From NCBI GenBank assembly GCA_002269645.1, contig NIVC01001900.1, forward strand, positions 159,710 through 223,709: a stretch of DNA of 64,000 bases. The letters are read 5' to 3'. Below are positions 1,453 through 58,079 of this stretch, piece by piece. Position 1 is the first letter of the stretch. Every line of letters begins with the position of its first letter. Under the pieces are notes generated by a model. It worked only from the letters and a program-made list of their open reading frames with translations. It ran no database searches and was not told the DNA's origin. The position numbers and the translations under genes are program-made. This DNA is from Macrostomum lignano (taxonomy: Eukaryota).

Positions 1453-2810
1453 TTATTCAATCACCACTCAAGATGAGCCGCAAAAGCTCCAGCGACAGCT
1501 TGAGTTCGGACGCGCCTCCCGCTTCCCCAACTCCTCTCTGCATCATCTGCGACCAAGCTGCAGTCGGTGTGGCTCCGTTCTCCCGCTGCCACATGTGCAG
1601 TCAACACCTCAGTGTCGATGTGGCCAATCTATTCAAGCTCAAGGAGCAGGTCGAAGAGCTGCTGCGTGCCTACTCAAAAGACTCACAAGAATCACAAGAG
1701 TCACAAGGCGCAGCAGGTGCAGCTGGCCGTGCAGCGCTGCTGCGACACAGACAAGACGCTGAGTCGCTGCGTCGTCTCGCTCTCGACATCCAACAGCAGC
1801 TGCAAGAGGTCAATCACAAATTCGATTTGGTACAGCAACACATCGACTCGTTTCGTAGCAGGGTGACGGGCCAGCTCTCAGGTGTACTTGAGGCAGTGCG
1901 TGTGTGCGAGCGGGACCTCGAGGACGTCTCCAGCTACAAGCAGGAGGTGGCCACGGCGGAGGCTGCAGGCGACATGGCGGAGCTGCTTCGCCTTGTCCAG
2001 TCCATGCACGAATCGCTTGGAGACTTGGAGGCCGACTTTGAGAGGTCAGAGCACCTGCTCAGAGACAAGAGCGACAATGAGGAGGTGCAGCTGCGGCTTC
2101 TGGGCCAGCTCGAGCGGCTGGTCGGCATTTGTGCGGGACGCAGTGAAGAGGGCGACTGGTCGAGAGACGCTGCGGTGACCGCGACATCCGACGAGATAGA
2201 AGCCGCTGAGAGAGAGAGACTGCTGTTCGATCCGATGGTCTTCAGTCACGAGGTGAAGCTGGATTATGATGTTACATGGCTGATGGCTGACTGTGTGCAG
2301 CGACACCAGGGGATTCGTTGGTGACCGCTCAGGCCGTGTGGTTCGCATCGACTCAGCGAGAGACGGCAGCGAGGCTCTGCCTCAGCCCTGCATCCTGACA
2401 TCATACTTTTCCGACAGAGACCATCTACTGGTGCTGTCTGTGGATGGCTCACAGAAGCTGCGGTGCCACTGCGACATCGACTGGAAGAATGACATCCGTG
2501 GCCTTCACTGCGACCATCAGCTGCTGTTCATTGCTCAGCGTGACACAGTGACAGTGACGGACCTGAGCGGTCGCCCAGTGCGTCGAATTCGCGCACACAT
2601 CGAGGGCTTCGGTGACATCAGTGGAATCGGCGGCAACGCAGCCTCCGTGTTTGTGTCCAGTGGAAACAAAATTGCTGCATTCAGCAAAGCGACTTGGCAG
2701 ATGGAGACGGTCATCACGCTGTCTCAGTTTCCTCATGCTGCACTGGGTAACCTGACGAGTCATAACAACTGCATTCTGGTGACAGACTGGAGGCACAATC
2801 AGGTGCACAG

Positions 2811-5800
2811 TCCGGCTCGGGGGCCGGCAACTCCCGCGGCCGGGGGTCCGAAAATCCCCCAACCCTCCAGCTCGGAGGTATTTCTCTCCGCGAACCCCGC
2901 GGTTACTACCCTAAGTGGGGCTAATTCGACTCCCACTGGTGGAGATTCTGGTGGTGACACAACCACGTACCGCGACAGCGAGGCTAACGCGGCTCCCAGC
3001 ACTGTCCGCAAGAGGCAGCAGCCTGAGGACCGCACGCTTACCCCCCAGGACCCGAAGCGCTCTAAGGGCAGGGGGACAGCCGGCTCCTATGCCAAGGTGG
3101 CTGCTGAGCCCCTCCATAAAATCTGCGTCCGTGCGGCCAGCGGGACGCTGAGTGACGCCCAGATGGAAGGTGCTGTTGCCCTCGTTGACGACTTCCTCTG
3201 GGATAACGACCATCTCGGTGTTGAGGTCGAGTCGGTCAGATTCGCCAACGGCAATCTCATCCTCGCTTTCAAAAGTGAGGTCCATCTGAGCACTGCCTTA
3301 GCCAACCTGCCCAGCATCGACTGGAGTACCTCCACGGCACAGCTCCCGGAGCTGGTCGTTGAGAAGGCCCGTCCTCCGCCTCCATGTAAGAGGTATAGGG
3401 CCTTCTATTCCGGGCACAGGACGATCGAGGAGATCCGTGGTCGTCTTGTCGCCAAGCACCCCGAGTTGCCTGCGGACGGCCTCCGGGCCTACAAGGAGGT
3501 GCCGGCCAAGGACGGCAACGGGAAGACCCTCTACATGGGCCTCTCCGCTGACTGGGAGCGCCACATGCAAGGCAAAGACCACGCCGCCTACGTTGGGGCA
3601 TGGAAGTTAGTCTTCCACCTCATCCCTAGGAGGAAACGCAACGCCGGCGGTGATCAGCGCCGAGACGATCCCGAGAGCCCGGATAGCTCTGAGGGCGAGA
3701 CTTAAGCTGTTCTCGACCCGCCATGCCCAGATCTTCAATGATGAGGCGTGACCGTCTGAGGACCAACCCGGCGGGTGGGTCCAATGATGATTTAACCACA
3801 CTCACGCAAAACAGTGATCCTAACCTGCACATCGTGCAGATTAATCTGCACCACGCGGTCGCAGCCTCCAGCAGCCTCACCGACACCCTCGATGGCACCG
3901 GTGTTGACATCTACCTCATCCAGGAGCCCTACACCGTGAGAGGTAAGCCCACCCTGCTGCCGAAAGGCTACCAGATCCTCTTCCTCTCTGGAGGGGAAAC
4001 CCCTAGGGCCATTGCTCTGGTCAAGTACGAGCTCGCAGCCATGCTCATGCCGATGTTTTGCAATAAAGACATCTGTACCTTCACCGTGAACGGGATGATT
4101 TTCTCATCCGTGTACATGGACATTCAGGATGAACTTCCGTCACCCCTCCTGCAGGATCTCGCAAACCATTGTATCATCGAGAACCGGAACCTCATTAATG
4201 GTTGCGACGCTAATGCTCACAACACTGCGTGGGCTAGCAGTAACACTAACCTCAGAGGTAGTATGCTTATTGATTTCATTAACACCTCGAATTTGCATAT
4301 TTGCAACTTGGGGCGTAAACCCACCTTTGCGAATGCTAGCAGGAAAGAGGTCATTGATCTCACCCTTGCGTCCAGTAGCATCCTTAATCGGATTCAAAAT
4401 TGGAGGGTCAGGGACGACATCCCCTCGCTCTCGGACCATTTCTACATCCATTTCAGCGTCACAGCTGGCGGCGCTCGCGTCACCAAGGCGAACCGTCCCA
4501 ATTTAAAAAGGGCGGACTGGACTGGCTTCAGAAGGGACCTTGAGTCTCTGATCAGCAGCGAACCGGCCGATGACCTGGAAGGCTGCGATGATATTCCGAG
4601 CATTGAAGCACGCTGCAACAAACTTGTCGAGCTGCTTAATGCGGCCACGATCAAGAACGCTCCTCCGATTGTCAGTAGAAAGAAGTACTCACCTTGGTGG
4701 AACAAGGAGCTCACCCGCTTAAAAAAGGCCTCCCGTCGGTTGCATCGGATTGCCAACCGGAACAACACCCCAGAAGACTGGGAGAACTACCACTCTGCTT
4801 TGAGAATCTACAAGAGTTGCATCCGGAAGGCCAAAAAGGACACCTGGAAGGCCTTCTGCGCCGGTTTAGAGGGCCAGCATCCTACTGCCCGGCTGGTCAT
4901 GTGCCTCAGGCATGACAACCTCGCCCAGTGTAACTCCCTCCTCCATTTCGATGGCAACTATTCCAGAACCGCCGAGGAATCCCTCAATCTGCTTTTCTCA
5001 GCTTGTTTCCCCACATGCGAGCATCCTGAGCAAATCGTTGCTGATCACAACCCAAGAGATCGACAGCTTTTCGAGCAGTGCGCCACCAAGAACTTAATTC
5101 AGCTGGCCGCCAACACTTTTAAGCCGTTCAAAGCCCCCGGCATAGACAATATCGCCCCCTGTGTTCTCCAGGAAGCGGTTAAGCTGCAGAGCTTCTCTGC
5201 CTTTTTCTCTAAGCTCATCACCGACTGTTTCACCACTGGGTACATTCCCACTATCTGGAGGACCGCTCGGGTGGTCTTCATCCCCAAGCCTGCCAAAGCC
5301 GACTATACTAATGTGAAATCTTTCCGCCCCATCAGCCTTACATCCTTCTGCATTAAGCTGATGGAGAGACTCATCTTGTGGAGGCTGCGCGACTGCGAGT
5401 TAAGGACGGCACCCATAAGTAAGCACCAATTCGCCTTCCAGCCAGGTAAAACCACCGAGCACGCTTTGCATGTTATTACCTCAGCCATTGAGAAAGCTAT
5501 CCTGAGTAAGCAGATTGTCTGTGGGCTTTTCTGCGATATCGATGGGGCCTTCAATAACGTTTTGTTTGGCTCCTTCAGTGACTCCCTTTTGCAGAAAAAG
5601 GTCCGACCCAGCATTGTGCGTTGGATCGACTTTATGATCCGGAACAGGAAGGTGACTTCCTCCCTCATGGATGCCACCTGCACTCACACGGTTACTAAGA
5701 GCGGAGCCCAAGGTGGAGTGCTCACCCCGCTGCTCTGGAATCTCGTGATGGACGAGCTCCTGACGGCTGACGTCCCCAGCAGCATAGTCAAGGCTGGCTA

Positions 5801-7609
5801 CGCTGATGATGTCGCTGCTATTGTCAGTGGCCCTGACACCAGTACCCTCCGAAGCTTAATGCAGCAGTTCGCCGATAAGGCGCAAGCCTGGGCTACCCGG
5901 CACGGCCTAACCATTAGCACCGCTAAGACGGTGTCCATTATCTTCACCAGGAAGCGGAAGTGGAGCATGCGGAACCTCACCATCTACGGTAAGGACATAC
6001 CCTTAGTCAAGGAAACTAAGTATCTAGGTGTGACGCTCACCCACGATCTGCGTTGGACCAAGCACGCTGACAATGTCATCGGGCGCGCCAGGCGCTGCTT
6101 TGCGCAGGTGAGGAGAGCCATCGGGCCTACTTGGGGTCTTTCTCCCAAGACGGTCAGATGGATTTACACCGGCATCGTTCGGCCCAGTATCACCTACGCG
6201 TGTGTTATCTGGTCCAGTGCGTTGGAGTTGAAGACTGTACGGGACCGGTTGTACCAGCTGCAGGGTAACATCTGCCGAGCCATCACCGGTGGGTATCCAT
6301 CCACCCCTTACGAGGGGCTCAACACCATCCTCAGCATGCCTCCGCTGCATTTGTTCATTAGAGCTGAGGCGATGAAGGGCGCCGCGCGTCTCATCTGTGA
6401 TAAATTTATTGCTAACACGCCCTCGGGCTTCATGCCTGAGAAGACTCTTTTCCCACATCTGGACTATATCCGTCGCGATCTTCAACGCATCCACCTCAAT
6501 TTAGACGAGGTGGACTGCAGATCCCCACTCTCATCCTCAGGAGGGGCTTCAAGTGTACTCTTCCACCGAGAGGGAGTCACCCGCTGGACGTGGGCATCAA
6601 CCGGAGAAGCCAGGGTATTCACTGCTTCACTGACGGATCCCTGCGTGACGGTCTCGCTGGTGCGGGCATTGCCATTTTCCACAAGGGTGAAGCGATCTTA
6701 CAAGAGAGTCTTCATCTTGGTGAGAATGTCTCGGTTTTTCAATCCGAAGTTGTAGCTATCAACCAGTGCGCTGAGCATTTGCACAAAGCTGGCATCAGCA
6801 GCTTTGACATTTATTTTTACTCTGACAGGCAGGCCGCTATTAAGGCCTTGTCTTCTATCAAGCTCTCAACCAAGTCAGTCTCAGACTGCCTCAAAAGCTT
6901 GCAGACCCTAGCGATTCTCAACAGGATCAATGTTATCTGGACACCAGGCCATAGCAACATCCTCGGCAACGAGCTTGTGGATCAGCTTGCCAAGCGGGGT
7001 TGCACCCCTGATGGAGCGCAACGCTCAGTCAAGTTACCTTCTCCGAAGTCATCAATCAACCGCGCCATTCAAGATTGGCTGAACCGCCAGCATCAGACTC
7101 ACTGGGACAGCTGCTCCGAATACCGGCAAGCACGAAAGGCTATGCCTGCCATTAACCGGAAAGTATCCGAATATCTAATCTCCTTAAGTAAAACTGACCT
7201 GAGGGAGATGTGCATGGGCATTACTGGCCATGGCTTCTTCCAGAGACATATTTTACTGCTAATTGGCTGCTCCCCTATCTGCCCATTATGTGATTTAGAG
7301 GAGGAAACCTCGACGCACCACGTCACTTTCTGCCCGCACTTCAACGAGGCGCGGAGGCGTCACCTCGGTCACCCGCTAAGGCTTGACAAGCTCACCACTC
7401 CGGACCGTATCCGTGATCTACGTGCATTCGTTCGGGATTCTGGGCGGATGAAAATCGCAGACGCCACTCTCGCGAGCTCTTCTGCCGGCGAGGGGTGGGC
7501 GCAGCCCCAAGGCTAACGCCTTTCTGTTTCTGTTTAGCTTGGGGTTGCGATAGGGGCCTCGCGGCCTGTTCGCGGCGCTCTGCCCCCCGTCGGTAGTAAG
7601 TAAGTAAGT
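2811..7609 (+). mobile_element. non-LTR retrotransposon, LOA/R1-group-like (ORF1 + APE-RT-RNase H-Cys finger), 5'-truncated
   Basis: 13-bp TSD ATCAGGTGCACAG at 2798-2810 and 7610-7622; (TAAG)n tail at ~7594-7609. ORF2 has QINLHH, QEPY, GCDANAH and SDH (APE), FRPISL, DIDGAF and GYADD (RT), FTDGS...SDRQAA...[13 protein letters not shown] (RNase H) and CPLC..HH..C. Confidence 0.93.
3723..7516 (+). CDS. LINE ORF2 (endonuclease-reverse transcriptase-RNase H) with one 1-bp frameshift near 6520
   Basis: ORFs 3723-6755 and 6590-7516 join by a frame change at GACTGCAG/ATCCCCACT, giving ...[40 protein letters not shown]. Confidence 0.88.
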
Positions 7610-9287
7610 ATCAGGTGCACAGAGTGCGCATCGACACCCAGCAGCTGGTCGCCTCCTTCCAGACTCAGCGTTCCGGCCTCCAACAGTTTGCTGGTCCAGT
7701 AGATGTGGCCGTCGACAGCAGAGGCCGCCTGTTCGTGAGTGAATATTTGGGTCACTCAGTGCGAGCGGTGGCTGCAGACGACGAGTCGCTGCTGTGGACT
7801 CTGGGGACTCCGGGCGAGAGCGGCAGCGGAGACGGCAGATTCGAGTATCTATCGAGTCTGGCGGTGGTGACAGGAGGTCCGCGCGAGCAGCTGGTGGTGG
7901 CTGACCTTTTCAACAGCAGACTGCAGGTGTTCAGTGCACCCTAATTTTATTCACAGGCCCAATAATAATAGAACTGTGGGGTGTCTGGAGTTGATTGATT
8001 TATTGGAGGCTGGGTTTTTGTTAGATTTTTTCCCATTGTATTATGCAATTTCTTACATTTGATGACGTTCTTTGTCTGATAATTGTTTATCAAGTCGAGT
8101 ACATTCAAAATTGATATTTATTGAATAGAAGCACATTAAACATTATGCATGCATTGAGTATAATTAAACTAAACTTACGCGTTGGCCCTAAAAAATTCTA
8201 TCATTGTTTTTTTCTAGAAGTTTCAGCACCATAAATTGGGTTTTGACTGTTGAATTGAATGTCAGCAAATCCTGTGCAATGTCTCCTGGAAATTTTCCAT
8301 CACTCTGTGCTCAATCAAACTCCAGTTTTTGGCTCTCGAACAGTTCATTCATTTCTATCAGTCGCTCGCTTCTGCGGTTTTCTCCAAACTGCCCCTCAGT
8401 TTGCACTCAGACTTACTTGTTTTCAAATGCTTTATCCATTTTTCTTTGATATTTATGCAGCCTCCGCGTCACCTTTTCTGTGTCAGAACTGACGTAAAAT
8501 CTGATTTAATTTCTCTTTTAACTGCCTCACCTGAATTCATAATGCTATCCAGCTATGAGTTCATTGCCAGCCAATGAAAATGCTCAAACAAGCAGAAGCT
8601 GAAGATGAGACCCCTGCATGTTCACCCAATAGGAATCAGCAAGGTGCAATGGAAATCTCCCAATGCGAGAGGCTGAAAGATGCTGTAAAACCGCTGGTTA
8701 GACCAAGCAGGAAGCGCAGCCCTCTCTCCCTCGCACCTGCACTAAATATTCTCCGACCTGAGCAGACAGTCTCAGCCGAACTACTCAGAGTGAGCAGATT
8801 AACCCAGCTGATCCTAGCAAAGCACTCCCTCTCCTCCACACATCAGATCGAACTGCTGGTTCGCCCTGACAGCGGAACCTCAGAGCGAGCACAAAATATT
8901 CGGAAACTCCTGACTTGGTGTGGCTGATCTTGCACTGCACTCTCTGATGTAAGCCAGCATCACTGCGGTGACAGCATCAAATACAGCAGACTGCGAGTCT
9001 CCCTTGTGACTGCATTATCAAGAAAAGTCGGTTGAATTTCCGACTCAGTGATTTGGCTCTGACACTCGGAATGGAAATGACAGACAGCCACTGTAGTGAG
9101 GTGAGAGTCCCTGATGCCAAGGTATTGAAATATTTCACTCGCGGCAGACTCCGCGTCGCTTCTGTGTTGCATTTTCCTCAATGGGTCACTGCTGTGTTTT
9201 AATGTGCATGAGCACAGGTACTTTTAGCTGGGAAATTATAGTTAAAATATGAGTGCTTTGGAAAGTTGAAATTAATGGCACAACTGA

Positions 9288-9500
9288 GGTTTCAGTGACT
9301 GGGTTTCAGTGACTGGGTTTCAGTGACTGGGTGTCAGTGACTGGGTTTCGGTGACTGGGTTTCAGTGACTGGATTTCAGTGACTGGGTTTCAGTGACTGG
9401 GTTTCAGTGACTGGGTTTCAGTGACTGGATTTCAGTGACTGGGTTTCAGTGACTGGATTTCAGTGACTGGGTTTCAGTGACTGGGTTTCATTGACTGGGT
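9288..9500 (+). repeat. 14-bp minisatellite (GGGTTTCAGTGACT)n
   Basis: Direct reading, ~15 copies. Confidence 0.95.
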
Positions 9501-11126
9501 TTTATAACCCAGGTTACTCAAAGAAGAGAGGGGAGATCACGGGGATCTGAGTCTTCCAGATGATGATGAAATGGTTGATTCTTAAGCGAGCTCAATTCTC
9601 AAGAAAGATATCGGATGTGGCTCTGGCATGGAGGTCAGGGGTGAGTCCAACCCAGGCCAGTTTGAAAGAAATGGATGAAATTCTGCTACGGCGTGACGCG
9701 CGAACAACGTGCGGCCTTGACCCGTCCTTCACCAGAGTCGCCAGGCCAGCAAATGACGTCACCTGTCTAGCAGCGCTGTGATTGACTTGGAAAATGGGGA
9801 GGGGTTACGCAACAAGTCACGTGACAAATTCAATTGATGAGAACAGATTACGGAGATCGGGGCAATAAATGCTGATTCAGAACAAAATAACGGAGGTTGG
9901 GGTGGGCGAAAGCGGAGGGGTGGGTGTAAGCGGTGACTCACTGGGGATTCCAGAGCCGGGATCATGCAAGACCACGTGTACAATTGGGGACTCTTTAACA
10001 TTGCAAATTAGTGAGTGGCTGCCGAAAGCCGCTGCTGCATCACCAGCTAAGAAACTTCAACTGACTCCATGCTGCATAGCGACTGCGGTCAGACATGCTA
10101 ACCAAACATGAAAACAGACACGTTGATTGAATTGTGAGAGCGGTGGCGTACACAGCATTTTTCATTGGTTGGGACGCCGAATGTATTTTGTAGGAAGCTG
10201 GATTTTTTTAAGAAATGCATCGCAGTGCATTCAGTTCTCAGCTCTCGAGTATTTTCTCCATTGACTTTGTCTATGGCGAAACCCCATTCATTGGACAGAA
10301 AAAAACCGCAGCAGGTGACGGAAAAGTGCTCAAAGACAGCTCAGAGCAACTCACTGCAGGATTTTATTTTTCAAACGAGTAAAGAGCAGGCGCTCCTTCG
10401 GTGCCGTGTCTGCTGCCTGCTGCTCTCCGCAATTTTTTTTCCTTATTGAGTGATGCAGAATGGAGACCTGAAACTGCATGATTGAAATAAGTGAAATATG
10501 CCTGAGTGACAGATGAGCATTGGAGTATCAGGCACACGAAAATTCTTGCAGCTGCCTTTGTTGGTATTTAATAATATAAAATTCATTGTTTAGCTTTAAT
10601 GCCACGCATTGTTTATGGCCTATGTGAGATTGTTAAATGATATGGCAGAGACTTATTGCATTTGATTTGCCCAATTGTTTTCAATGAGGATGAATGGCTT
10701 TGTTGATATATTATTATAATTAAAATACGATTTGAATCAGCAATAGACAAAAGCATCCATGATTCATACATATTTTGCACTAATTGAAAGTAATGGGACA
10801 AAAATATGCATGAATAATCCATGCTTGTGTGTGTGTACAAGCACATTGATGAATCATGCATGACCATGCAGACTACATGTATAAAGCATACATGATTTTT
10901 AAAACACACGGATAGCACATGCATACCCATGCATGTAACATGCATGAATCATGTGTGTAACATGCATGAATCATGTATGATCATCGATGAAACATGCATG
11001 TTTTTTGCCTAGGGATCATGCATGATTTATCCATGATCGAAGGCTTAGGGTGGGCACAAGGCACTGCACTGCTGCATGCACCTGTAAGCGCGATACAGTT
11101 ATAAACTGTTCCGCAGCTGCAAGTCT

Positions 11127-18652: not shown

Positions 18653-18922
18653 CATGCTGCATAGCGACTGTGGCATGATTGCCAATCAGACATGCTGCAT
18701 AGCGACTGAGGCATGATTGCCAATCAGACATGCTGCGTAGCGACTGTGGCATGATTGCCAATCAGACATGCTGCATAGCGACTGCGGCATGATTGCCAAT
18801 CAGACATGCTGCATAGCGACTGCGGCATGATTGCCAATCAGACATGCTGCATAGCGACTGCGGCATGATTGCCAATCAGACATGCTGCATAGCGACTGTG
18901 GCTTGATTGCCAATCAGACATG
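18653..18922 (+). repeat. 38-bp minisatellite, 7 copies
   Basis: Unit CATGCTGCATAGCGACTGYGGCATGATTGCCAATCAGA; copies start every 38 bp from 18653. Confidence 0.95.
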
Positions 18923-41761: not shown

Positions 41762-41779
41762 AGTTAAACTTAAAGTGAT

Positions 41780-41962
41780 CACAGCACAGCACACTGTAAG
41801 GATGGATTGGTCACAGCACAGCACAGCACACTGAAAGAATGGATTGGTCACAGCACAGCACACTGCAAGAATGGATTGGTCAACAGCACAGCACACTATA
41901 AGGATGGATTGGTCAACAGCACAGCACACTATAAGGATGGATTGGTCACAGCACAGCACATT
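41780..41962 (+). repeat. 32-37-bp minisatellite (CACAG)nCACACT..GGATTGGT
   Basis: Direct reading, ~6 copies. Confidence 0.9.
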
Positions 41963-48900: not shown

Positions 48901-49221
48901 TTTCTCAGAGACAATACCTAAAAACAATTAAATGTACTTTCTACACTCACCATAAATAGGGTTTGAAACAGCCTGAACTTGAGCTGGCTCAATGCCATCT
49001 TGTTGAACTACTGATCTATGATGCTTCACAAACACATCATCATTGTTATTAGTTGGACTAGCTCTGCTTGGCAAATTTGCAGATATATTAGTAGTTGAAG
49101 CATTCCTATTGCTATGAGATCCAGATGCAACAGGCAAAAGTATTTGACCAGATACATTGCCATTTATTAGCCCATTATAGTCATTAGAACTGTCATCACT
49201 GGCAAATTGGGTGCCATGCAT
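42924..49221 (-). CDS. SLC18B1: SLC18B1-like MFS transporter, 7 coding exons: 49221-48951, 48179-47883, 46813-46367, 46165-45775, 44443-44369, 44256-44164, 43595-42924 (~748 aa if a 1-bp loss in exon 6 is corrected)
   Basis: GT-AG junctions with consistent phases; motifs SIMAPFFPSEAESKGVS, GWIFG, IAETFCGIGAVLGPAVGG.LY..GGF.LPF, EFVGP..GGFLVD; C-terminal ExxxLL (EKSPLL) sorting motif. The gene symbol is by recognition of the family, and orthology was not tested. Confidence 0.8.
43589..43935 (+). repeat. ~51-bp degenerate tandem repeat spanning the last splice acceptor of the MFS gene
   Basis: GGGTCATCTGAGGTCAC recurs at 43589, 43640, 43691, 43742, ~43794, 43850 and 43913. Confidence 0.9.
44560..45690 (+). 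repeat. 26-bp satellite (AGAAGATCCCATCTTTAGAAATCCCC)n, ~42 copies, intronic
   Basis: Direct reading. Confidence 0.97.
46200..46348 (+). repeat. (GACA)n microsatellite in the intron at 46166-46366
   Basis: Direct reading. Confidence 0.97.
47215..47490 (+). repeat. GATGCTTGCTATCTGGGG-type minisatellite, intronic
   Basis: Direct reading. Confidence 0.92.
47612..47829 (+). mobile_element. SINE family B, partial copy
   Basis: Shares TTGGAATCTCGGCTTGGCT...CAGTGAAGTGTACATGCCTAA...AAAGTTAGGGCCGCTGT with the copies at 56310-56663 and 58072-58425. Confidence 0.85.
48235..48810 (+). repeat. 34-bp minisatellite (TTAGATTCTTCCCAATTCCACCAACATTTCCCAT)n, intronic
   Basis: Direct reading, ~17 copies. Confidence 0.95.
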
Positions 49222-49647
49222 ACTGCTTCAACTTGGACCTTGTTAAAAGTATAATTAAATTTATCAGATAAAGCTTGCCTGACCTGAGCTGCAAGTTTTT
49301 AATCTTGATCTTTATTCTATTACAAATTAGTTAAATATTATTAGTTAATTAAAATTATAGAACAATGATTTGTTCAAGCAAAGAATTTGTTGCTGCAAAA
49401 AAGGAAAAATATAATAGAATCAATATAACATTAAATAAAAAATCAAATATTTTATATTGACTAGGCTATTGATTATAATCTAATAATTATAATGTAACTA
49501 TAATTTTGGCATTAAAATATTTAAATTATATATTTATTTGAAGACAAAATATAAAAAAATATAATTATTTAAAGTATTAGATTTTAATGAGTTTTTAATT
49601 ATCAAATTTGAATAGACCTTAAGTCTAACTTGTATTAGGCTTATATC

Positions 49648-49831
49648 TATAAACATGCTTGGGCGCAACCTTGGGATTCACTCGGCCGTTTCTATTGGCA
49701 ACACACACACGTAAGTCGCTATTGGATGGAATAGTAGTCACGTGACTACTCTCAGCCAATAGCGACTTACATGTATGTGTTGCCAATAGAAACGGCCGGG
49801 TGACTCCCAAAGTTGCGCATGTATGTCTATA
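49648..49831. mobile_element. palindromic foldback/MITE-like element (~184 bp)
   Basis: Arms such as GGCCGTTTCTATTGGCAACACA..GTAAGTCGCTATTGG are reverse complements; perfect 18-bp central palindrome AGTAGTCACGTGACTACT (49733-49750); TATA at both ends. Confidence 0.75.
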
Positions 49832-52800
49832 AATTAGATCATTGATAGGCTATTATCATAATGTCAATGAATAAAAGGCTAAAACATAGGCCTAGATTTT
49901 TTTTCTAATTCTAATGTTAGCTAGGCCTAGGCCTAGAAATTATAGAATCTTATTATTTTTTAACTTGGTATCCTAGTTAGGCCTAGTACCCACCTAGGTT
50001 AGCCTAATCTAAAAAGGCATAAAGCTAAATGACATGATTTTAATATTTAAAAACCTAGATCTAAAATTATAAAAGGCTTATTTTAATCAATATAAAATAG
50101 GTTACATAGATAATTTATAAAAGCTAGAATGATTAAGCCTAGATATAATTTCATTTATTTTCTATTAGAATTAGGCCTACTCTAGATTAATTAGGGCCTA
50201 CTTATAAAAATAGGCCTAGCTTTACTATCAGTCTATATGATATGATCTAATCTATGATTTAAAAAGGCCTAGGAGGCCTAGCTAGATAGATTTGCCTATC
50301 TATATTGATACTTTAGCTAAGCTAAGTTAGACCTAGTATTTCAAATTCAAAATAGCCTAAGTAGGCCTAGGCCTTGTATTTATATGTATAAGCTAGGGGG
50401 GCCTATGCTAGGCCTAGTTATGGCCTGGCCAAGCAATAGGACTATGCCTAGGCCTAGCTTCTGCCTTCTAGGATAGGGGTTTAGCTATAGGCCTAGGCCA
50501 TAGGCCCTAGTCAGTACCAGCCAGTGTAAATAGCATTGAGAAAAAGGAAGCTATAGTATTAGCTAAATAATCAAGAATAGGCCTACCTAGTCCTAGACTC
50601 CTAAGCCCTAGCCCCTAGGCCTAGTCAAATCCTCATTGTATTATTTATACCTAATCTAATATTCTTGACTTAGACAAATATATATATATCTAATATATAT
50701 ATATATTTATTTATTTATTTATTTATAGACAACTAATGAACCATATCATCAGGCTTTCAAAAAAATTGAATTGTGCCTAACAGCCTAAGCCCTAAGTACA
50801 ATTAAAGACTAATTATAATTACAGCAGTGCATTCCTTGCAATATGCAGTGGACAATACTCAGATCAGATTTCAGAGCAATTTGTCAATATCAAGCTTAAG
50901 GCCACTTCGACACCCGATAAGACCAGAGAAAACCTGATAAAGTACAACTGTACAAGTGTCATGCTTTTACATTAGGCCTAGTGCCGGCGTGTGCGCGTGT
51001 ATAGCTGTTTACACTTTACACGTTTGTTTTCTTTTCATGGATCATTCGTTCGATGTGTGAAGTAAGACTAAATCGGTGCCAAAAAACGATTCCGGAAACA
51101 TAAAAGCAAATTTAATATCTCATTAGCACTCAAGTAAAAATGCCAAGCAGTCGCCACTGCAAGCAATCTTCAAGTTTAATTTTCATAGTCGGATTGTAAG
51201 TAAATGCTTCATTTATTTGTTCTGGGCAATCGATTGAATTAAACAATGCAATTAACACAGTACAGCACGAGTATTCAACCAATAATTAAACATCTGAGTT
51301 GTCGCCGGACCGCGGCCGACCCTACCACCCCTCCTCCTGACAATAATTGCCACCTAAAGGAATAGAACTTTTATACCATTATTTGTAAACTCAAAATCAA
51401 TTTAAAAAAATAAATTTTAACACCATAAATATACAACGCTATATTAAATGCTCTTGATCTAACGTGTAGATACTCATCATCATATTCTCTCCTTAATTCT
51501 TACTATCTCACCTTCAGACTGTGTCCTTGAAAGGAAAATGATTCACTATAGTAATATAATGTAATATAATACGAGTATAAACTCTCTCTCAATATACTTA
51601 AATTCAAGCGATGTTTGTCCGTTTATTTGTCAATTTTATATCTCTCTGAAACTATACTGGCCAAACTTTGATGGGATGACATGCAGCGGCAGAAGGAGAG
51701 CGCGGACCCAGAATAGAAGCCTTCAATTACAGACAGGATCATTGACAATACTAGCATCAGCAGCAGCCGGTGCCAACAGTTTCCCATTGATTTCTGAAAC
51801 TCTGGAGCAGAGGTCGGCAAACTCCGGCCCGCAACCCTCTCAACCCTCTTTGAAACTTCACTCAATGTACAAGGTTTGCAGTCTCAATTCGACTCTCTTC
51901 TCTATCCCTTCTGCTCTACCTTCTTGCCTCGCCTTTTTTCTCCCCTCTTTTATCTTTGTTTCCACTCCTAACTCTCCCCTTTCCCTTCTCTCTCTCCCCT
52001 CTCTCCCCCTCTTCCCCCTTTTCTCTCTCCCCTCTTCTCTTATCTTCAGCAAAAATGTCGGAAAATTTTCTTACTTCGAATGAGAGGGAATAGAAGATTA
52101 AAGACAAGCAAACAGAGGAGAGGCGAGAGATTCGATATGAGAGAAAAGGTAGAAGAGAAGAGAAGAGAAGAGGGGAGGAGAGAGATCAGAGAGAAGAGCA
52201 GAGGAGAGGAGAGAGGAGAGGAGAGAGGAGAGAAGATGGGAGAGAAGCGAGGGGAGAGGGGAGAGAGGTGGGAAGGGAGAGAGGAGAAGTGAGAACAGAG
52301 AGAGTACGCAGAGAGGTGGCAGATATGAGAGAGTAGAGAGGAGACATGAGAGAGTAGAGAGGGAAGAGAAGAGAGCAGAGAAAAGAAAAGAGAAAGGAAA
52401 GAGAAGAGAGAAGGCGGAAGAGAAGAGTGAGGATGTATTTTGCTACGAATTTTCTTATTAGCTTATTTTTTCAAACAAAATGTTTATGATTGAAAAATAT
52501 AGTTGATGAAAGCTTCTTGCATTTTTAATGAAATATGCACACAATGAAAATGCACAACAGAAATACAATAAGTCATTGTTCGAAGACGAATCTGAATTTT
52601 TCAAATGCTAGTGTACATGCGAATTGATTTGAGCAATCTTTCACTCGCGAAGCTACTGGCCCACAAGGCTCTTGTAATTGCATTTATTTTTCATAAACAG
52701 TGTCTATCGTATAATATCCACGAACATGCACGTTGACGTCACCCGGGGCTATATTAAAACACCTTGCGCAACCCCTGGGCAACGCTGAAAGGTACAGCTA

Positions 52801-54070
52801 CATGTATATAGCTACCAGACCTCGTCCCTAGACTGTCCGCCTCTGGATGGTGCGGTAGCTGACATTGCGGCAAAGATTCCATTATCTGGACAGCAGGCCC
52901 GGGCTGTTTGAAAGACACCCTATTCACTCTTATTTCTAGTCCCGAGATCATGCGTCATGCGATCACGTGAGCGTCATGCGTGTGATATTGAAGGCCGTGA
53001 CTTGTCCTTGACCTCCGCTGTACCAAGCAACCCTGATGACGTCACCCGTCAGCCCCGATGTGATTGGACGAGAAATTTGAGTGGTAACGTAACAGGCAGG
53101 ATAAAGCTTGGGAAAGATAGGAGGGAAAATAGGGGTCATAAAACTGTCACACGCATGAATGATTTCAAAAAAGAAAGAATCGGTGCGGTTGGCGCGCGGG
53201 GAATGTGGTGGGCGATAAGCATGAGTCATCACAGGAATCATAGGGAAAGAAGGGAGGGTGCGCTAAAGTTATTGGGGCCCAGCTGACGTGCAATCAAGGT
53301 AGTGTATATGACATAATCCACACAGCTAAACTTACATTCACCATTCATGCAGATTTGAAATGATTAAAGTGACTTATACGGTGTGAAAACTATTGTGTAT
53401 AGTATGTATACCTTAATTTGTGTTCGCACCTCGCATACACTACACCACAAATCAATTTTAATAATTTAGACTAATTGCTAGTCGAAAATTAAGTAATTGA
53501 TGAACTTCTGATTGTTTATATAAGCCTTTTATTGTTGAAAAAACTTACGGGTACTCAACACGGACGACAGGGCGCCTAAAACTTGCAATGTTTGGCGTAT
53601 CTCTAGAACTCAATGCTCTATTGCTGTGAAAAAGTCAACTTGGCTCAATATCACTCAGGAATGCCTTGGCCCCCCGTCTCTAACATTTAGTTATAATAAT
53701 GGATTGAGTGGCCAGAGCAGAAGTGAGGACGCTCTCTCATGGGTGACAGAGGTCCAGTAAGCACTTAGGACTATCTAGGACACTGAAGGTTAGCCCTAAG
53801 CAGCTGCATTGTCCACATGAGGATACAAGTATTTAAACGTCCATGAGCTGAGAGGCCAAGCCATGAAATTCCAAGCCCAATAAAACAGTCTTCATTTTCA
53901 TTTCTCTTCCCATTAAAGCATTGAAAAATGCACTATAGCAAAAAATATAAATTGTGAGCAAGTGTCTGGATGAATTCTCCTCCTCTTGCAAATAAATCAG
54001 CAGAAAATCATTGGATACTTACAAATCAACTCAGCAAATTATAAACTTCAACAAAAGACAATACAATTAA

Positions 54071-55009
54071 ATGGCTCTTCACCAGATTCTACTGGTGTCT
54101 CTTGCGTCCGTTCTGCTCTGCACCTCTGAAGCCTCAATTTCCGGAGATCGCTACCCGGTCCTCCAGCGCACCTGCCTCAACAAGTCTTTGTCCGAGTGGA
54201 CCCTCCCTAAGCCGGCCGTCTCCATTCTGCAGTGCATCTTTCTGAGTCGTCTGCAGAAGCTTTCAGCCAATCGGTGGCCCAGTTCAGCTCGCGAACTGCC
54301 ACCTGTTCGCTGTTTCTCTTCAGCCGAGTCTACCACCTGTTCAACCTGAGCAGCCCCGCTGATGGTCCGTCAGACGAGGCCAATTCGTTCAAGCTCGTTG
54401 TGGACTCAGAGCTTGACGTGCTCACCGCCAATCGGCACTTTGCCGCCGTGTGGCTCAGAGGCAGAGGCGAGCAACTCGAGAACCTCGTGTGCAGCGATGG
54501 CGGACAGAAGAACGCCGTCCAGCACACCGGAGTGACTTGGACTGACGAGGGCGCCAAGATGGACGGCCTGACATCCAGGATGTGGGTGGACGACACCGCC
54601 GGGTTTGAATTTAAGAAAACAGCTTCACGTTTCTGATGGAGCTGAAGAGGCAGCCGTAGATAAGTGCTTTCATTGAGCTCACCGACTGCAGCTTCAATTC
54701 TGGGAATGGGACCTACCCAAGGTGACTCGCAAGCTCTACATTCAAACCGGACACCGGAACTTGTTATCCATTAACCAGGAGCTGCTAATGATCATGAACA
54801 GGACCTGTCTGTTCGTTGACGGTTCTTTTATTCCCGGCAACCAAGTGTCTCTCTACAACGTCAAATTTGCCAAAATAGACAACTTCTGCATGAAGATCAG
54901 CTGGCGCGACCTGACTGGCTCGAACTTCAAAATAAACGGCACCGTGAAGATGCTGGCCGTGTACAACTTCTACCTGACCGCCGACGTCATCAACCGGCTG
55001 TTCAACTGA
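54071..55009 (+). pseudogene. secreted protein (signal peptide, Cys-containing PAN/apple-like segment, beta-rich LamG/ConA-like region) with several frameshifts and a stop
   Basis: Hydrophobic N-terminus MALHQILLVSLASVLLCTSEA; consecutive GC-rich coding-like ORFs 54071-54349, 54232-54636 and 54722-55009 in changing frames. The domain names are inference. Confidence 0.5.
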
Positions 55010-55849
55010 GCGATTGTGAAGGATATGTCTCTGAAAATTAAAGTAAAGTAAATTAACTGTTGTAACGTTTACTGCTGCAGTTCAAAGTTCTCAGCAAAAT
55101 TCACGAGCTGATACCGTTTTGCAACTGCATTCGATTACGTACTCAGCGTGTTTTCAGTTGTTGATACTAGCTAGATGCATATAGCAAGACCGTTATAATT
55201 GGAGACCCTCAAGCCTAAGCTATCTGAAGCCGATACAGCGTCGCTGGGAAATGGGTACTTTTATATTTAACCGACGTTTTGCAGACGTATAACAGCGTTT
55301 ATATATTAGTGTAGTATAAAAGACTGACATATTAGCTAGCGACGTCTATTGACAATCGGAAAGACGGAAATTGTTATGAAAATGTTGTATTAATTTCAAT
55401 ATCTGTCCACTGTACAGCAGATCTGTATTCATTCGCGAAGATTTTTGTCATTAGCTAAAAAAATTATACATGCTGAGAACCTACAGTAAACTGAATCGTC
55501 GCTTATTCCGTTATTCATTTCCAGATATTTTAGTAACCAACTTTCAGATGCTTTGCTATACTTCAAACTCACTTAATCCCATGTTAAATGCGCGTGAAAA
55601 GAAGATAGCTCACAAAAAAGTCTTATATGCAATGTGCATAGTACAGGTTCACTTTCATGGAAATTACATGGGCTGTCCTGAGAACTCTTAAACTTAGCTA
55701 ACTGATTGCTTGACGAACTAATCGCAAGAGACAACTGAACCACCGGTGGAAAGTCCTTTGACGCGAGGTTCTCCTTTTGTTAGTATTTGTTCAGGAAAAC
55801 CGAAGCACAATTAAAACTGCACAATTATGTAAAGAAATTCTAAATCCTC

Positions 55850-56140
55850 ATTCAAGATCCCCTTCCCAGATCCTCATCCTAGATCCCCATCTCAAATCCC
55901 CATTCCGAATCCCCATTTCAGATCCCATCCCAGATCCCCATCCCAGATCCCCATCCCAGATCCCCATCCCAGATCCCCATCCCAGATCCCCATTCCAGAT
56001 CCCCATCCCAAATCCCCATTCCGAATCCCCATTTCAGATCCCATCCCAGATCCCCATTCCAGATACACATCTCAGATCCCCATTCCAGATACACATCTCA
56101 GATCCCCATTCCAGATACACATCTCAGATCCCGATCCCAG
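55850..56140 (+). repeat. 13-bp minisatellite (CAGATCCCCATCC)n
   Basis: Direct reading. Confidence 0.93.
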
Positions 56141-56309
56141 ATTCTCAGAACTTTAAGGTTAGCCCAACCGGAAGTCAAAGTATATGCTTGAGAGGGTTTT
56201 GATGTACAGTAATAAAGTTTTGCATGAACACTTAATCGAGAAGGTTGCAACTTTCCAGGAAAACTGATGTTCTTAGACAAAGCTGTAATAAGTTTAGCAA
56301 CGAATTTTT

Positions 56310-56663
56310 ATGATTATTAGAGATAGGGGCTGTGTGCACCCAGGCGCACTTTAAGCGACATTGTGACACAACCGGCGAGAGGCATTGCAGCCCATTCCGC
56401 CGACTCCCCTGAGCAGGCACACAAGCGCGCGGATACGTATGCAGTCATACGCACAGGAGTGTACAGCGGCCCTAACTTTATTTATATCGTTAGGCATGTA
56501 CACTTCACTGCGCCTTGGGGGTTGGCCTTTAAGGCCATTAATTGCACGAGCAGAGCCAAGCCGAGATTCCAATTCAGCCCCAAATTAATGTGACTGCACT
56601 TGGAATCGAGCCTGGGCCGCTGGCACTTCGGAGCGCTGCGCTAGACCGCTGGGCTACGGCCCC
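56310..56663 (-). mobile_element. tRNA-derived SINE family B, full-length copy
   Basis: Minus strand reads GGGGCCGTAGCCCAGCGGTCTAGCGC (A box), then GGCTCGATTCCAAG (B box), body, and an A-rich tail. Confidence 0.85.
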
Positions 56664-56896
56664 GTAGCTACGACTTATGCAGCTGAAGGTTATAATGTAC
56701 TTCATTTCAATAAATGACAAATTCTAAATATATTGACCATAGAAATATCGATCTTTATTGGACAAGCACAGCCATTGAATCTGAAGAAATCTAAAATAGG
56801 AAAAAGAGCCAAAAGAAAGATTCAGCCTACAATTGAATTAAATCAACCACTCCCAGAAACCCCACAGTTCGATTATTATTCGGCCTGAGAATGAAA

Positions 56897-58079
56897 TCAG
56901 GATGCACTGAACACCTGTAGTCTCCTGTTGTAACTGTCAGCCACCACCAGCTGCTCACGCGGACCTCCCGTCACCATCGCCAGACCCAATGGATACGTGA
57001 ATCCTCCGTCACCTCTGTCGCTCTCGCCCGGAGTCCCCAGAGTCCACAGCAGCGACCCGTCGTTTGCAGCCACCGCTCGCACTGAATGACGCGACCAATC
57101 ACTCACGAAGAGGCGGCCTCTTCTGTCGACGGCCACATCCACTGTACCAGCAAACTGGTGGAGGCCGGAACGCTGAGTCGGGAAGGAGGCGACCAGCTGT
57201 TGGGTGTCGATGCTCACTCTGTGTACATGACTATGCGTCAATTCTGTCACCAGAATGCAGTTGTCGTGAGTCGCCAAGTTGCCCAATCGAGCATCAGGAA
57301 GCTGAGACAGCGTGATGACCGTCTCCATCTGCCAAGTCGCTTTGCTGAGTGCAGCAATTTTGTTTCCACTGGACACAAACAGGGAAAGTACGTTGCTGCC
57401 GATTCCCCTGATGTCACAAAAGCCCTCAATGTGGTGGAGGACACGACGCACCGCGCGACCGCTCAGATCCGTCACTGTCACTGCGTCATGCTGAGCAATA
57501 AACAGCAGCTGACGGTCGCAGTGAAGGCTCCATATGTGCTTCTTCCAGTCGATGTCGCATTGGCACCGCAACTTCTTTGAGCCGTCCACAGACAGCACCA
57601 GTAGGTGGTCTCTGTTCGGATAGAATGATGCAAAGATGCAGGGATGATGCAGTGCTTTTCTGCGTTCTCTCACTGAGTCGGCGGGGACCACACGGCCTGA
57701 GCGGTCACCAACGAATCCGCTGGTGTCGCTGCACACAGCCAGCCAATTAACAGGGCCATCCAGCTTCACCTCATGACTGAAAACCATCGGCCCCAACATT
57801 CTCTCTCTCTCAGCGGCTATATCTCTGTCTATCTCCTCGGATGTTGCGGTCACCGCAGCGTCTCTCGACCAGTCGCCCTCTTCACTGCGTCCCGCACAAA
57901 TGCCGACCAACCGCTCGAGCTGGCCCAGAAGCCGCAGCTGCAGCTCCTCATTGTCGCTCTGGTCTCTGAGCAGGCGCTCTGACCTCTCAAAGTCGGCCTC
58001 CAAGTCTCCAAGCGATTCGTGCATGGACTGGACCAGGCGAAGCAGCTCCGCCATGTCGCCTGCAGCCTCCACCGTGGCC
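56897..58079 (-). pseudogene. TRIM-NHL-like paralogue 6, lacking the 5' ~130 codons
   Basis: Homology starts at ATVEAAGDMAELL; the upstream part of ORF 56897-58186 is antisense SINE sequence. Confidence 0.88.

Follow-up and report, generated by a model that had tools for sequence, protein, structure and literature searches.

Descriptions of TRIM-NHL proteins usually portray them as single-copy regulators of development that evolve slowly, and the fast-evolving TRIMs that are linked to immunity are vertebrate SPRY proteins. It is well established that several TRIM-NHL proteins (TRIM71/LIN-41, Brat, Mei-P26 and NHL-2) bind RNA through the top face of their propeller. Expanded families of intracellular adaptors are also known from nematodes, where Thomas reportedly found in 2006 that positive selection in MATH-BTB and F-box expansions is confined to the substrate-binding domain, with pathogen proteins as proposed targets. 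Canonical TRIM-NHL genes belong to the conserved, slowly evolving 'group 1' TRIMs (PMC2533329). The 'group 2' TRIMs, which have been linked to antiviral defence (PMC2533329; PMC3137616), are restricted to vertebrates and are said to be absent from invertebrates (PMC2533329). In Podospora anserina, the HNWD NLRs (het-d, het-e plus het-r) combine a conserved WD40 framework and concerted evolution with a few hypervariable codons on the interaction surface of the propeller (PMC11761791).

Here we analyse a gene family with six copies in a 64-kb stretch of Macrostomum lignano DNA, hereafter the window. Like TRIM-NHL proteins (TRIM2, TRIM3, TRIM32/Thin, TRIM71/LIN-41, Brat, Mei-P26, NHL-2), its products carry a C-terminal NHL beta-propeller behind a long helical region and, as in TRIM71, the chain stops directly after the last 'RLQVF' strand; judging from a structural model, the variable loops would be D-A and B-C, which form the ligand-binding top face of TRIM-NHL proteins. 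Unlike TRIM-NHL proteins, however, the family is devoid of a RING, of a Pfam-detectable B-box and of a filamin domain, its genes are intronless, multi-copy and arranged in tandem, and 22 propeller sites evolve at an omega of about 9.5, in contrast with the 'group 1' TRIMs. With TRIM5alpha, finTRIMs and other 'group 2' B30.2/SPRY TRIMs it shares clustered, lineage-specific expansion of TRIM-type genes and positive selection on loops of the C-terminal recognition domain, but the recognition domain of the latter is SPRY and not NHL and their RING E3 domain has been kept: this likeness is a functional analogy in evolutionary mode, which implies neither family membership nor homology of the variable domains. 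HNWD proteins are similar in that a beta-propeller sensor with a uniform framework has a few codons under diversifying selection on its surface, but there it is the repeats of a single gene that vary, the propeller belongs to the WD40 type, NACHT and HET modules make up the N-terminal part, and the setting is fungal allorecognition and immunity. The nematode MATH-BTB and F-box families are likewise large and arranged in tandem, evolve by birth and death and encode intracellular adaptors whose partner-binding module stays constant, but their folds are unrelated and their link to ubiquitin ligases is established.

Results

The window contains six copies of a TRIM-NHL-like gene, two of which are intact

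The window had originally been predicted to hold an array of six TRIM-NHL-like genes. Comparisons with copy c2 by blastn recovered all six copies at the predicted places (Table 1). They are copies of an intronless gene of about 1.65 kb, with a short Zn motif followed by a long helical region and then by the NHL propeller; only c2 and c3 are intact ORFs, however, and the four others are defective, so that these are not six genes. Every motif string quoted in the prediction (W-KNDIR/KKSIH, FAGPV/FAYPK, SEYLG, RFEYLSS and the AD-LF/CG series) was found in the translations and in the codon alignment. An indel map and junction sequences showed that c1 was disrupted by a frameshifting 7-bp insertion near 2274 and by the insertion of a ~4.8-kb LINE flanked by a 12-13 bp target-site duplication (TCAGGTGCACAG). 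The counterpart of c5 in NIVC01000032.1 is 98.6% identical and has an intact ORF of 567 aa. Nearly all copies of the window and of other M. lignano loci, though not c5, have in common a conserved block in the 3' UTR, about 100 nt long. Besides the LINE, the interior of the array also holds an LTR element.

Table 1. Coordinates of the gene copies and associated features in the window
Feature	Position	Strand	Description and evidence
c1, 5' part	1473-2810	+	codons 1 to about 436; pseudogene; blastn 91.6% to c2
LINE retrotransposon inside c1	2811-7610	+	Pfam Exo_endo_phos_2, RVT_1, RNase_H; ORF1-like region, endonuclease/RT ORF 3723-6755, RNase H ORF 6590-7516, (GTAA)n tail
LINE target-site duplication	2799-2810 and 7611-7622		junction sequences
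c1, 3' part	7611-7944	+	final two propeller blades and stop codon; blastn, alignment
c2	16182-17810	+	intact ORF, 542 aa; Pfam NHL E 6.7e-8; AF2 model
NHL beta-propeller of c2	16932-17807	+	aa 251-542
Conserved 3' UTR block	17811-17900	+	contains AATAA(A)
c3	26715-28370	+	intact ORF, 551 aa; Pfam NHL E 1e-9
c4	33534-35214	+	pseudogene; in-frame TAG 34002-34004; 5-bp deletion near 34313; propeller part still open (ORF 34312-35214)
c5	36410-38111	-	frameshifting 2-bp deletion near 37213
c6	56897-58079	-	5'-truncated, without the first ~153 codons of c2; rest open
Inverted copies of a dispersed repeat flanking c6	56300-56659 and 58072-58430

The family is expanded in M. lignano and turns over by birth and death

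All 14 homologues retrieved from a word index came from M. lignano, and at least 14 additional copies were found across eight loci of this species, with intact and broken ones interspersed; no fewer than 8 additional copies or fragments sit within a single stretch of 54 kb. The full architecture has so far been seen in M. lignano and, beyond it, only on a few metagenome contigs. The family is thus a lineage-specific, multi-copy expansion that turns over by birth and death, as also seen from the defective state of four of the six window copies. The prediction had named untranscribed, TE-borne fragments as an outcome that would contradict it, and this was not borne out: the repeated unit is the gene itself, and since the paralogues are annotated from GenBank gene models derived from RNA-seq (PMC5730564), the family is transcribed. 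Our literature search found no paper on this M. lignano family, and its gene IDs were absent from the searchable supplements.

The proteins combine a single-zinc motif, a predicted helical region and an NHL propeller

In c2, the Zn motif reads C23-x2-C26-x15-C42-x2-H45, the helical region spans about aa 40-214 and the propeller aa 251-542. Pfam detects two NHL repeats per protein (26.1-38.4 bits for a cut-off of 20), and sequence matches in the PDB were the NHL domains of Thin, TRIM71 and TRIM2/3 (E 1e-16 to 1e-22), with Thin as the best match of a profile search (E 1.2e-22); this homology to solved NHL domains is confined to the last two blades. The propeller of the c2 AF2 model has a pLDDT of 80-94, and its best Foldseek matches were six-bladed NHL domains (Thin, TRIM2, TRIM3 and TRIM71; TM 0.75-0.79, rmsd 3.2-3.6), seven-bladed WD40 domains being poorer (TM 0.55-0.60, rmsd 8-12). 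DSSP assigned 26 strands to this model, with six strand segments in aa 261-332, the first blade region. The N-terminal half is modelled at low confidence (pLDDT 30-58), with helices at 40-83, 90-145, 154-192 and 196-214 (pLDDT about 50-58), and no resemblance in sequence between the helical region and solved TRIM coiled coils was detected.

In agreement with the earlier remark that no RING is visible, Pfam gave no RING match at E<=1 in four window proteins nor at E<=0.01 in ten relatives, and the RNA-seq-based GenBank models begin at the same Met, without an upstream coding exon. No zf-B_box match was obtained from Pfam at E<=1 either. Across subfamilies, the only conserved Zn ligands are those of C-x2-4-C-x14-16-C-x2-H, enough for one zinc. 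UniProt tags some members 'B box-type', presumably through a weaker profile. Since the proteins, whose N-terminus is rich in Ser and Asp, have no signal peptide or membrane segment, they are intracellular.

Some 22 positions of the propeller experience very strong diversifying selection

Codon site models were run on the window copies and 11 further copies from M. lignano contigs, using our own implementation with a single NJ tree, on which branch lengths were fixed except for a scale factor. The codon alignment comprised 18 copies, 11 of which are intact ORFs (nine locus copies plus c2 and c3) and 7 broken; L7a and L7c, two locus copies found later, are outside this alignment and both are intact ORFs. 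Omega under M0 was 1.04. Models allowing positive selection were preferred by wide margins (2dlnL = 534 for M2a vs M1a, 572 for M8 vs M7 and 525 for M8 vs M8a), with about 9.5% of the propeller sites at an omega of about 9.5, while more than half of the sites are under purifying selection (omega0 0.13-0.19). The M2a/M1a statistic was 312 for intact copies alone and 145 for the six window copies alone. Sites with P>0.95 numbered 22 and correspond to c2 residues 260, 262, 288, 304, 305, 332, 334, 348, 360, 373, 411, 413, 430, 460, 462, 477, 478, 510, 511, 531, 532 and 534. In a cross-validation in which hypervariable sites were picked solely from other copies, the window copies showed a pN of 0.51 at these sites vs a background pS of 0.13. 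Whole codons had been said to be replaced at these positions, and codon pairs did differ at two or three positions in 49% of cases at hypervariable columns vs 4.3% elsewhere in the propeller. Selected sites have an excess of Tyr (20-fold), Trp (3.4-fold) and Arg (2-fold) and are also rich in His and Cys. Altogether, very strong diversifying selection acts on about 22 positions of the propeller, in a scaffold under purifying selection, so that no two copies have the same set of loop residues. Among the N-terminal sites, a few (residues 3-6) likewise exceed an omega of 1, which the model proposed below leaves unexplained.

Selected residues map to one predicted face of the propeller

Alternate inter-strand loops (D-A and B-C) hold 17 of the 22 selected sites and the opposite loops a single one (Fisher p = 8e-7), three more being at adjoining strand ends, and 11 of the 13 odd-numbered loops carry a selected site. 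Faces were assigned from the DSSP order of strands and loops and from NHL motif logic, not from coordinates, and residues 304/305 would move to the other face if the fold had seven blades. With this assignment, the selected positions would lie in loops D-A and B-C, which together form a single face, the 'top' face of NHL domains, so that sites with omega>1 appear to be concentrated on the ligand-binding surface, as had been anticipated. The view of a lineage-specific, diversified family under diversifying selection is thereby supported by the site models, by this clustering on a face and by a repeated unit that is not TE-borne.

The 5' halves of the genes are probably homogenised

The front halves of the genes had been described as almost identical at the DNA level, and pairs of window copies are indeed 95.6-98.6% identical over codons 1-235, vs 84.8-90.1% in the propeller. 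Relative to the propeller, divergence in this N-terminal half is lower by a factor of about 4, with a dS of 0.03 in the helical region vs 0.14 in the propeller and a tree length of 0.82 vs 3.43. Considering that the 5' half is so little diverged although the copies have 5' flanks of at least 4 classes that are unrelated to one another, gene conversion among copies is the suggested cause, with selection presumably keeping the propeller loops distinct.

Discussion

In the model that we propose, the locus carries some members of a family that is specific to its lineage and has expanded in tandem, with intronless genes for cytosolic, RING-less, TRIM-NHL-like proteins, predicted to consist of a single-zinc motif (C-x2-C-x15-C-x2-H), a helical, coiled-coil-like region of ~170 residues and a C-terminal NHL beta-propeller. 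The invariant N-terminal half would have the same oligomerisation or effector-recruiting function in all paralogues, and each propeller face may bind a different fast-evolving ligand. The likeliest setting would be a genetic conflict, for example one in which proteins or RNAs of viruses, transposons or microbes are recognised; the family members would then serve as sensors or adaptors and not be E3 ligases in their own right. We consider the evolutionary and structural part of this model very probably correct, and the model as a whole, a diversified NHL recognition family in a conflict setting, probable; the conflict or defence setting, taken by itself, is plausible but falls somewhat short of an even chance. 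More tentatively still, the NHL propeller of Macrostomum may have become a germline-encoded, intracellular and innate-immune-like repertoire of hypervariable receptors, in which a homogenised signalling or oligomerisation half is combined with loop 'cassettes' that tandem paralogues would exchange and that selection would drive to keep up with viruses, transposons or microbial effectors. If so, this would be the first NHL-based counterpart of the SPRY repertoires of TRIM5/finTRIM or of the WD40 repertoires of fungal HNWD proteins.

A rival explanation is that there was no adaptive diversification at all, the loops being unconstrained in a decaying, largely pseudogenised family or being local hot spots of mutation or micro-conversion. 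Besides the many defective window copies, an overall propeller dN/dS of about 0.8-1.0, the reticulate sharing of loop motifs among copies and a nominal pS that is about 2-fold higher at hypervariable codons than elsewhere (0.26 vs 0.13) would fit such a scenario. Relaxed constraint cannot, however, yield an omega above 1, let alone the class at about 9.5 that is also found in intact ORFs alone, nor does it agree with purifying selection at more than half of the sites. Moreover, pS between c2 and c3 at hypervariable codons equals the background (0.107 vs 0.120) while pN reaches 0.49, and null simulations gave LRT values of at most 1.4 on a single tree and at most 4.8 under heavy recombination, with a new genealogy every 10-30 codons, so that the observed 534 goes far beyond chance. 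A non-adaptive origin of the variable positions is thus largely refuted and we regard it as very improbable.

Alternatively, the ligands may be RNAs. The proteins could be a diversified set of RNA-binding repressors of the Brat/LIN-41 type in which every propeller face has an RNA motif of its own to read, for instance one in transposon or viral transcripts of this TE-rich genome. RNA binding by the same top face in TRIM71/LIN-41, Brat, Mei-P26 and NHL-2, the nearest solved relatives, argues for this possibility, as do the enrichment of Arg, Lys, His and aromatic residues at selected sites and the LINE and LTR elements within the array; NHL domains of the Thin/TRIM32 type, which are the best matches here, nevertheless bind protein, and an enrichment in Tyr, Trp and Cys suits protein interfaces equally well, so that we find RNA ligands rather unlikely. 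A role in reproduction or in self/non-self recognition (sexual conflict, gamete or sperm-recipient interaction, allorecognition) instead of parasite defence seems less likely again. Strong, site-specific positive selection and tandem birth and death are typical of such genes too, and the mating biology of M. lignano, an outcrossing hermaphrodite with intense sexual conflict, also speaks in its favour, but intracellular proteins are a poor fit to extracellular roles in gamete interaction or allorecognition.

Under the diversified recognition model that we prefer, the NHL propeller itself would have turned, in a family of invertebrate proteins, into a surface for diversified recognition, and the scaffold that carries it has lost both RING and B-box. 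Innate immunity is poorly known in flatworms, and a defence or conflict system of this kind would give a view onto the recognition of non-self or of genome parasites in these animals. Since transgenesis and RNAi are established in M. lignano and the invariant 5' half offers a target for a pan-family knock-down, function is directly testable. The locus may also serve as a clean natural case of a gene with one half shaped by gene conversion and the other by diversifying selection.

As to species and locus, positions 35671-47004 of the window align with NIVC01000032.1 at 95-98%, and the MFS exon in the window matches a protein of M. lignano at 99% identity.

Copies of the NHL gene in the window

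When the intact open reading frame (ORF) of c2 was searched against the window with blastn, five further copies were found, so that the six-copy array seen in the original prediction was confirmed; as an array of six genes it did not hold, since it consists of two genes, c2 (542 aa) and c3 (551 aa), and four defective copies. c1 has a 7-bp insertion near 2274 and is additionally interrupted by a LINE, c4 carries both a TAG (34002-34004) and a deletion of 5 bp near 34313, c5 lacks 2 bp near 37213, and c6 begins at about codon 154, adjoining a dispersed repeat with inverted copies on either side. An exact-product look-up in public assemblies returned no record of the c2 protein. On GenBank contig NIVC01000032.1, from which we fetched locus L007 (124891-214015), the counterpart of c5 is an intact 567-aa ORF that is 98.6% identical and lacks the 2-bp frameshift, so that this defect is either recent or an assembly error; the copy at the position of c6 is full-length, yet only 86% identical.

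A self-comparison of the window showed that the repeat unit consists essentially of the gene itself, starting near the ATG and ending 100-400 bp beyond the stop, and that the intergenic DNA is not common to the copies. We therefore rejected a TE-borne cassette as the vehicle of the family, the repeat unit being just the gene and the flanks being unrelated. A retrocopy origin was also rejected, because the copies with the commonest type of 5' flank stay homologous upstream past a TTTCAG acceptor, in DNA that does not look transcribed, and because there is no poly(A) tract. The inverted ~360-bp repeats (88% identical) that flank c6, one arm of which has its inner edge at the c6 truncation point, were considered as a sign of capture, which we rejected because this sequence is a dispersed element that is also found elsewhere in the window and in the M. 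lignano loci L002 and L007.

Features of the window and of the matching GenBank locus (window positions unless L007 is named)
Feature	Position	Strand	Remarks
18-bp minisatellite GTCTCCCACCTGACCTGA	1220-1445		12.6 copies; directly upstream of c1
c1, blastn match	1473-2810, resumes 7610-8349
LINE within c1	2811-7610		EN/RT ORF 3723-6755 (1010 aa); RNase H ORF 6590-7516
c2, query ORF	16182-17810
LTR-retrotransposon interior	21864-25976	minus	between c2 and c3
c3, blastn match	26712-28460
c4, blastn match	33151-35618
c5, blastn match	38113-36414	minus
c6, blastn match	58079-56840	minus
c5 and its counterpart, as compared	36410-38111; L007 86294-87997
~360-bp repeat	56300-56659, 58072-58430		inverted, flanking c6
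~360-bp repeat, further copy	47612-47828
Antisense ORFs	36596-37105, 57086-57580	plus
Antisense ORFs in L007	87302-87811, 2244-2729	minus
MFS (slc18b1-like) gene exon	45771-46808	minus
Other minisatellites	9283-9502, 11129-11856, 18653-18922, 19735-20367, 20995-21366, 32767-33233, 38921-39449, 43588-43891, 44486-45699, 47219-47485, 48224-48819, 55844-56142, 59253-63918

Domains and predicted fold

NHL repeats were the sole Pfam matches (26-38 bits; cut-off 20) and neither a RING nor a B-box was detected by Pfam at E<=1, in line with the earlier remark that no RING is visible. Matches in the PDB were the NHL domains of Thin, TRIM71, TRIM3 and TRIM2, with E values of 1e-16 for the single sequence and 1e-22 for a family profile, the alignment being limited to aa ~417-542; since only the last two blades align to solved NHL domains in sequence and no end-to-end alignment of the propeller was obtained, our mapping of blades and faces rests on the secondary structure of an AlphaFold2 model. 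This model, computed for c2 from a 9-sequence family alignment, contains 26 beta-strands over aa 250-542 (pLDDT 80-94) and, in the N-terminal half, long helices at 40-83, 90-145, 154-192 and 196-214 with pLDDT 30-58. The best Foldseek matches were the six-bladed NHL domains of Thin, TRIM2, TRIM3 and TRIM71 (TM 0.75-0.79, rmsd 3.2-3.6 Å), compared with TM 0.55-0.60 and rmsd 8-12 Å for seven-bladed WD40 propellers. Against the PDB, the N-terminal 250 aa gave chance-level matches only, none significant, so that their sequence provides no link with TRIM coiled coils. Judging from an N-terminus that is Ser/Asp-rich and has no hydrophobic leader, the protein presumably resides in the cytosol.

A constant scaffold with hypervariable propeller columns

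A codon alignment of 571 codons was built from 18 copies, six from the window and 12 from M. lignano loci. The front halves, which had been described as almost identical in DNA, are indeed so: the window copies share 95.6-98.6% of nucleotides over codons 1-235, against 84.8-90.1% in the propeller. By the Nei-Gojobori method, dS was 0.03 in the helical region (dN/dS about 0.5), 0.32 in the linker and 0.14 in the propeller (dN/dS about 0.85), and the codon-tree length was 0.82 for codons 1-235 and 3.43 for the propeller. Most propeller columns are invariant, while a small set displays 6-9 different residues across the 18 copies. In these hypervariable columns, two or three nucleotides are different in 49% of codon pairs, compared to 4.3% elsewhere, which confirmed that whole codons are replaced. 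The combination of loop motifs is unique to each copy, and single motifs recur reticulately among copies, suggesting that motifs were exchanged by recombination or conversion. Between c5 and its counterpart on NIVC01000032.1, three adjacent replacements (E-S-A-L versus Q-F-A-F) fall exactly at the hypervariable F-A-x-P-x loop and may represent a micro gene-conversion tract.

Directly before the ATG, the DNA is of at least four classes that cannot be aligned with one another, the largest one with the conserved TTTCAG acceptor 22 nt ahead of the start codon and another one with the 18-bp minisatellite GTCTCCCACCTGACCTGA, an arrangement also seen upstream of L2c, a paralogue in L002 (contig NIVC01000200.1). 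Downstream, nearly all copies share a 3' UTR segment of ~100 nt that contains an AATAA(A) signal. c1, c2, c3 and c5 group in the propeller tree despite four different 5' flank classes. Since the 5' half is little diverged even though the 5' flanks of clustered copies are unrelated, the simplest reading would be that the 5' coding half is homogenised by gene conversion between neighbouring copies, with selection preserving the differences between propellers.

Variation is also found at the very N-terminus, where sites with omega >1 (2ΔlnL = 44) are residues 3-6 and some in a Ser/Gln-rich stretch of uncertain alignment. After Met-Ser, codons 3-6 (e.g. window 16188-16199) encode L/R/H/I, E/K/R/G/D/S, D/S/N/H/R and Y/S/T/H, and the following ~55 codons are nearly invariant.

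Positive selection on the propeller

Codon models were fitted with our own GY94/F3x4 likelihood implementation on an NJ tree, using 299 propeller codons of 17 sequences for the site models and branch lengths fixed from M0 up to a scale factor. These analyses demonstrated strong site-specific diversifying selection on the propeller, as anticipated by the original prediction, with a posterior probability >0.95 at 22 sites.

Site models for the propeller
Model or comparison	lnL	2ΔlnL	Estimates
M0	-6056.9		omega = 1.04; tree length 3.43
M1a	-5843.7
M2a	-5576.6		9.5% of sites omega 9.5; 51% omega 0.15
M7	-5866.6
M8	-5580.7
M8a	-5843.2
M2a vs M1a		534
M8 vs M7		572
M8 vs M8a		525

Neither recombination nor the analysis code explains this signal; data simulated under M1a gave an LRT of at most 1.4 on one tree (4 replicates) and of at most 4.8 with an independent genealogy per 10 or 30 codons (5 replicates). 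When the 11 intact ORFs only were used, 2ΔlnL was 312, omega was again 9.5 and 21 of the same 22 sites were recovered; with the six window copies only, 2ΔlnL was 145. In hypervariable columns picked on the 11 non-window copies only, pN among the window copies was 0.51, versus a pS of 0.13 elsewhere; in the comparison of c2 with c3, pS in these columns (0.107) equalled the background (0.120) with pN at 0.49. Relaxed constraint was rejected as a cause, since it cannot yield omega >1.

Selected sites concentrate in alternate loops

The selected sites are residues 260, 262, 288, 304, 305, 332, 334, 348, 360, 373, 411, 413, 430, 460, 462, 477, 478, 510, 511, 531, 532 and 534 of c2. When the 25 inter-strand loops of the AlphaFold2 model were numbered in order, 17 of these 22 sites fell in odd-numbered loops and a single one (288) in an even-numbered loop; the other four lie in strands, where 262, 334 and 462 are the first or second residue following an odd loop. 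Selected sites are present in 11 of the 13 odd loops, and their concentration in alternate loops is significant by Fisher's exact test (p = 8e-7 for odd loops versus all else; p = 6e-4 for odd versus even loops).

Consecutive antiparallel strands alternate in direction, so that the odd loops would all lie on one face if the strand count of every blade is even, as is the case in the six-bladed fold that Foldseek favours; in a seven-bladed alternative, residues 304/305 alone would switch face. In the four blades with an NHL consensus, the odd loops are either the stretch before 'P-x-G-V-A-V' (D-A loop) or the B-C loop ('A-D-x-x-N'), which joins the second and third strands. By standard convention, D-A and B-C loops form the top face of a propeller, and the NHL top face is the RNA-binding face in Brat and LIN-41. 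The predicted clustering of the variable residues on one propeller face thus agrees with the alternate-loop pattern, and on the model the selected loops would all belong to one binding face. Tyr (20-fold), Trp (3.4-fold), Arg (2-fold), His and Cys are enriched at the selected positions, and Val, Ile, Thr and Gln are depleted, a make-up characteristic of binding hot spots.

A transcribed family in M. lignano

In a word-indexed search, all 14 homologues found were M. lignano proteins (89-45% identity), named 'hypothetical' or 'B box-type domain-containing'. Many additional copies lie in the M. lignano loci that surround six annotated paralogues, with at least 8 matches in one 54-kb stretch; nine locus copies are intact, with ORFs of 539-563 aa, and several others are broken. 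An exhaustive profile search added about a dozen ~500-550-aa proteins matching both the helical region and the propeller: all those bearing an organism name are from M. lignano, and two (P0017 and P0020) come from short metagenome contigs. The other top profile matches were giant NHL-repeat proteins, with similarity confined to the last two blades. Related subfamilies have in common the motif C-x2-4-C-x14-16-C-x2-H at the N-terminus as well as many motifs of the propeller framework. Since the GenBank gene models of M. lignano derive from a genome-guided RNA-seq transcriptome (PMC5730564), family members are transcribed, and these models and the window ORFs have the same start Met.

A putative diversified recognition family

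The architecture, copy states and expansion of the family are established here. We regard it as a putative diversified recognition family that uses an NHL propeller, a reading of the original prediction that is supported by the sites with omega 9.5 and by their alternate-loop clustering. Each paralogue would have its own ligand specificity, for a ligand that may speculatively be protein or RNA, and the invariant Zn-plus-helical half would provide a common oligomerisation or partner-recruiting function. Since they have no RING, family members would act as adaptors or sensors, not as ligases. The selective agent could, speculatively, be a fast-evolving non-self or selfish element such as a virus, a transposon or a microbial effector. 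A role in reproduction or self-recognition, instead of a conflict with parasites, could also be considered for these propellers, but it is less likely for a protein that appears to be intracellular.

By its variable domain the family is a homologue of the TRIM-NHL proteins, but it lacks the RING and B-box that define TRIM membership, and also a filamin domain. 'Group 1' TRIMs, TRIM2/3 among them, are conserved, an evolutionary mode opposite to that of this family (PMC2533329), which evolves like the vertebrate SPRY TRIMs (TRIM5alpha, finTRIMs). Among propellers, it resembles in evolutionary mode the WD40 repeats of the HNWD NLRs of Podospora, where concerted evolution goes together with surface positions that are hypervariable and under positive selection (PMC11761791). 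Our literature search, which was incomplete and does not prove absence, yielded neither an account of any diversified family based on NHL nor a paper on the one in M. lignano; broad searches for B-box or TRIM-NHL expansions gave nothing relevant, and Mlig028814 and other gene IDs did not occur in the full texts and the M. lignano supplements searched.

Other features of the window

The LINE in c1 is apparently complete: its 3' tail is (GTAA)n, and the duplicated target site of 12-13 bp, TCAGGTGCACAG, lies on either side; its open ORFs suggest that it is recent and possibly still active. The LTR element encodes, over three overlapping ORFs, a gag with a CCHC knuckle, RT, RNase H and an integrase-like ORF. 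In c5, c6 and the GenBank counterparts of both, antisense ORFs of ~160-170 aa run over the part that encodes the propeller, and probably are a by-product of composition; c2 and c3 have no antisense ORF of at least 150 aa.

The MFS exon shares 99% identity with M. lignano BOX15_Mlig031423g1. A long ORF across this exon contains an in-frame (SVCL)n microsatellite translation, and part of it is probably intron read-through, since just 43% of its length aligns with the M. lignano MFS protein. Identity to NIVC01000032.1 drops across this gene, from 95-98% over window 35671-47004 to 85-91% over 47215-59065, and a stretch of ~62 kb within the MFS gene model on that contig (L007 13474-75908) has no counterpart in the window. 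The window is thus another haplotype, subgenome or assembly of a locus already known from M. lignano; the differences could be structural variation between haplotypes or subgenomes, or a difference in assembly. Finally, the window has a very heavy load of minisatellites, their units of 12-65 bp being repeated up to 61 times, which fits the ~15% of simple or tandem repeats reported for the M. lignano genome (PMC5730564).
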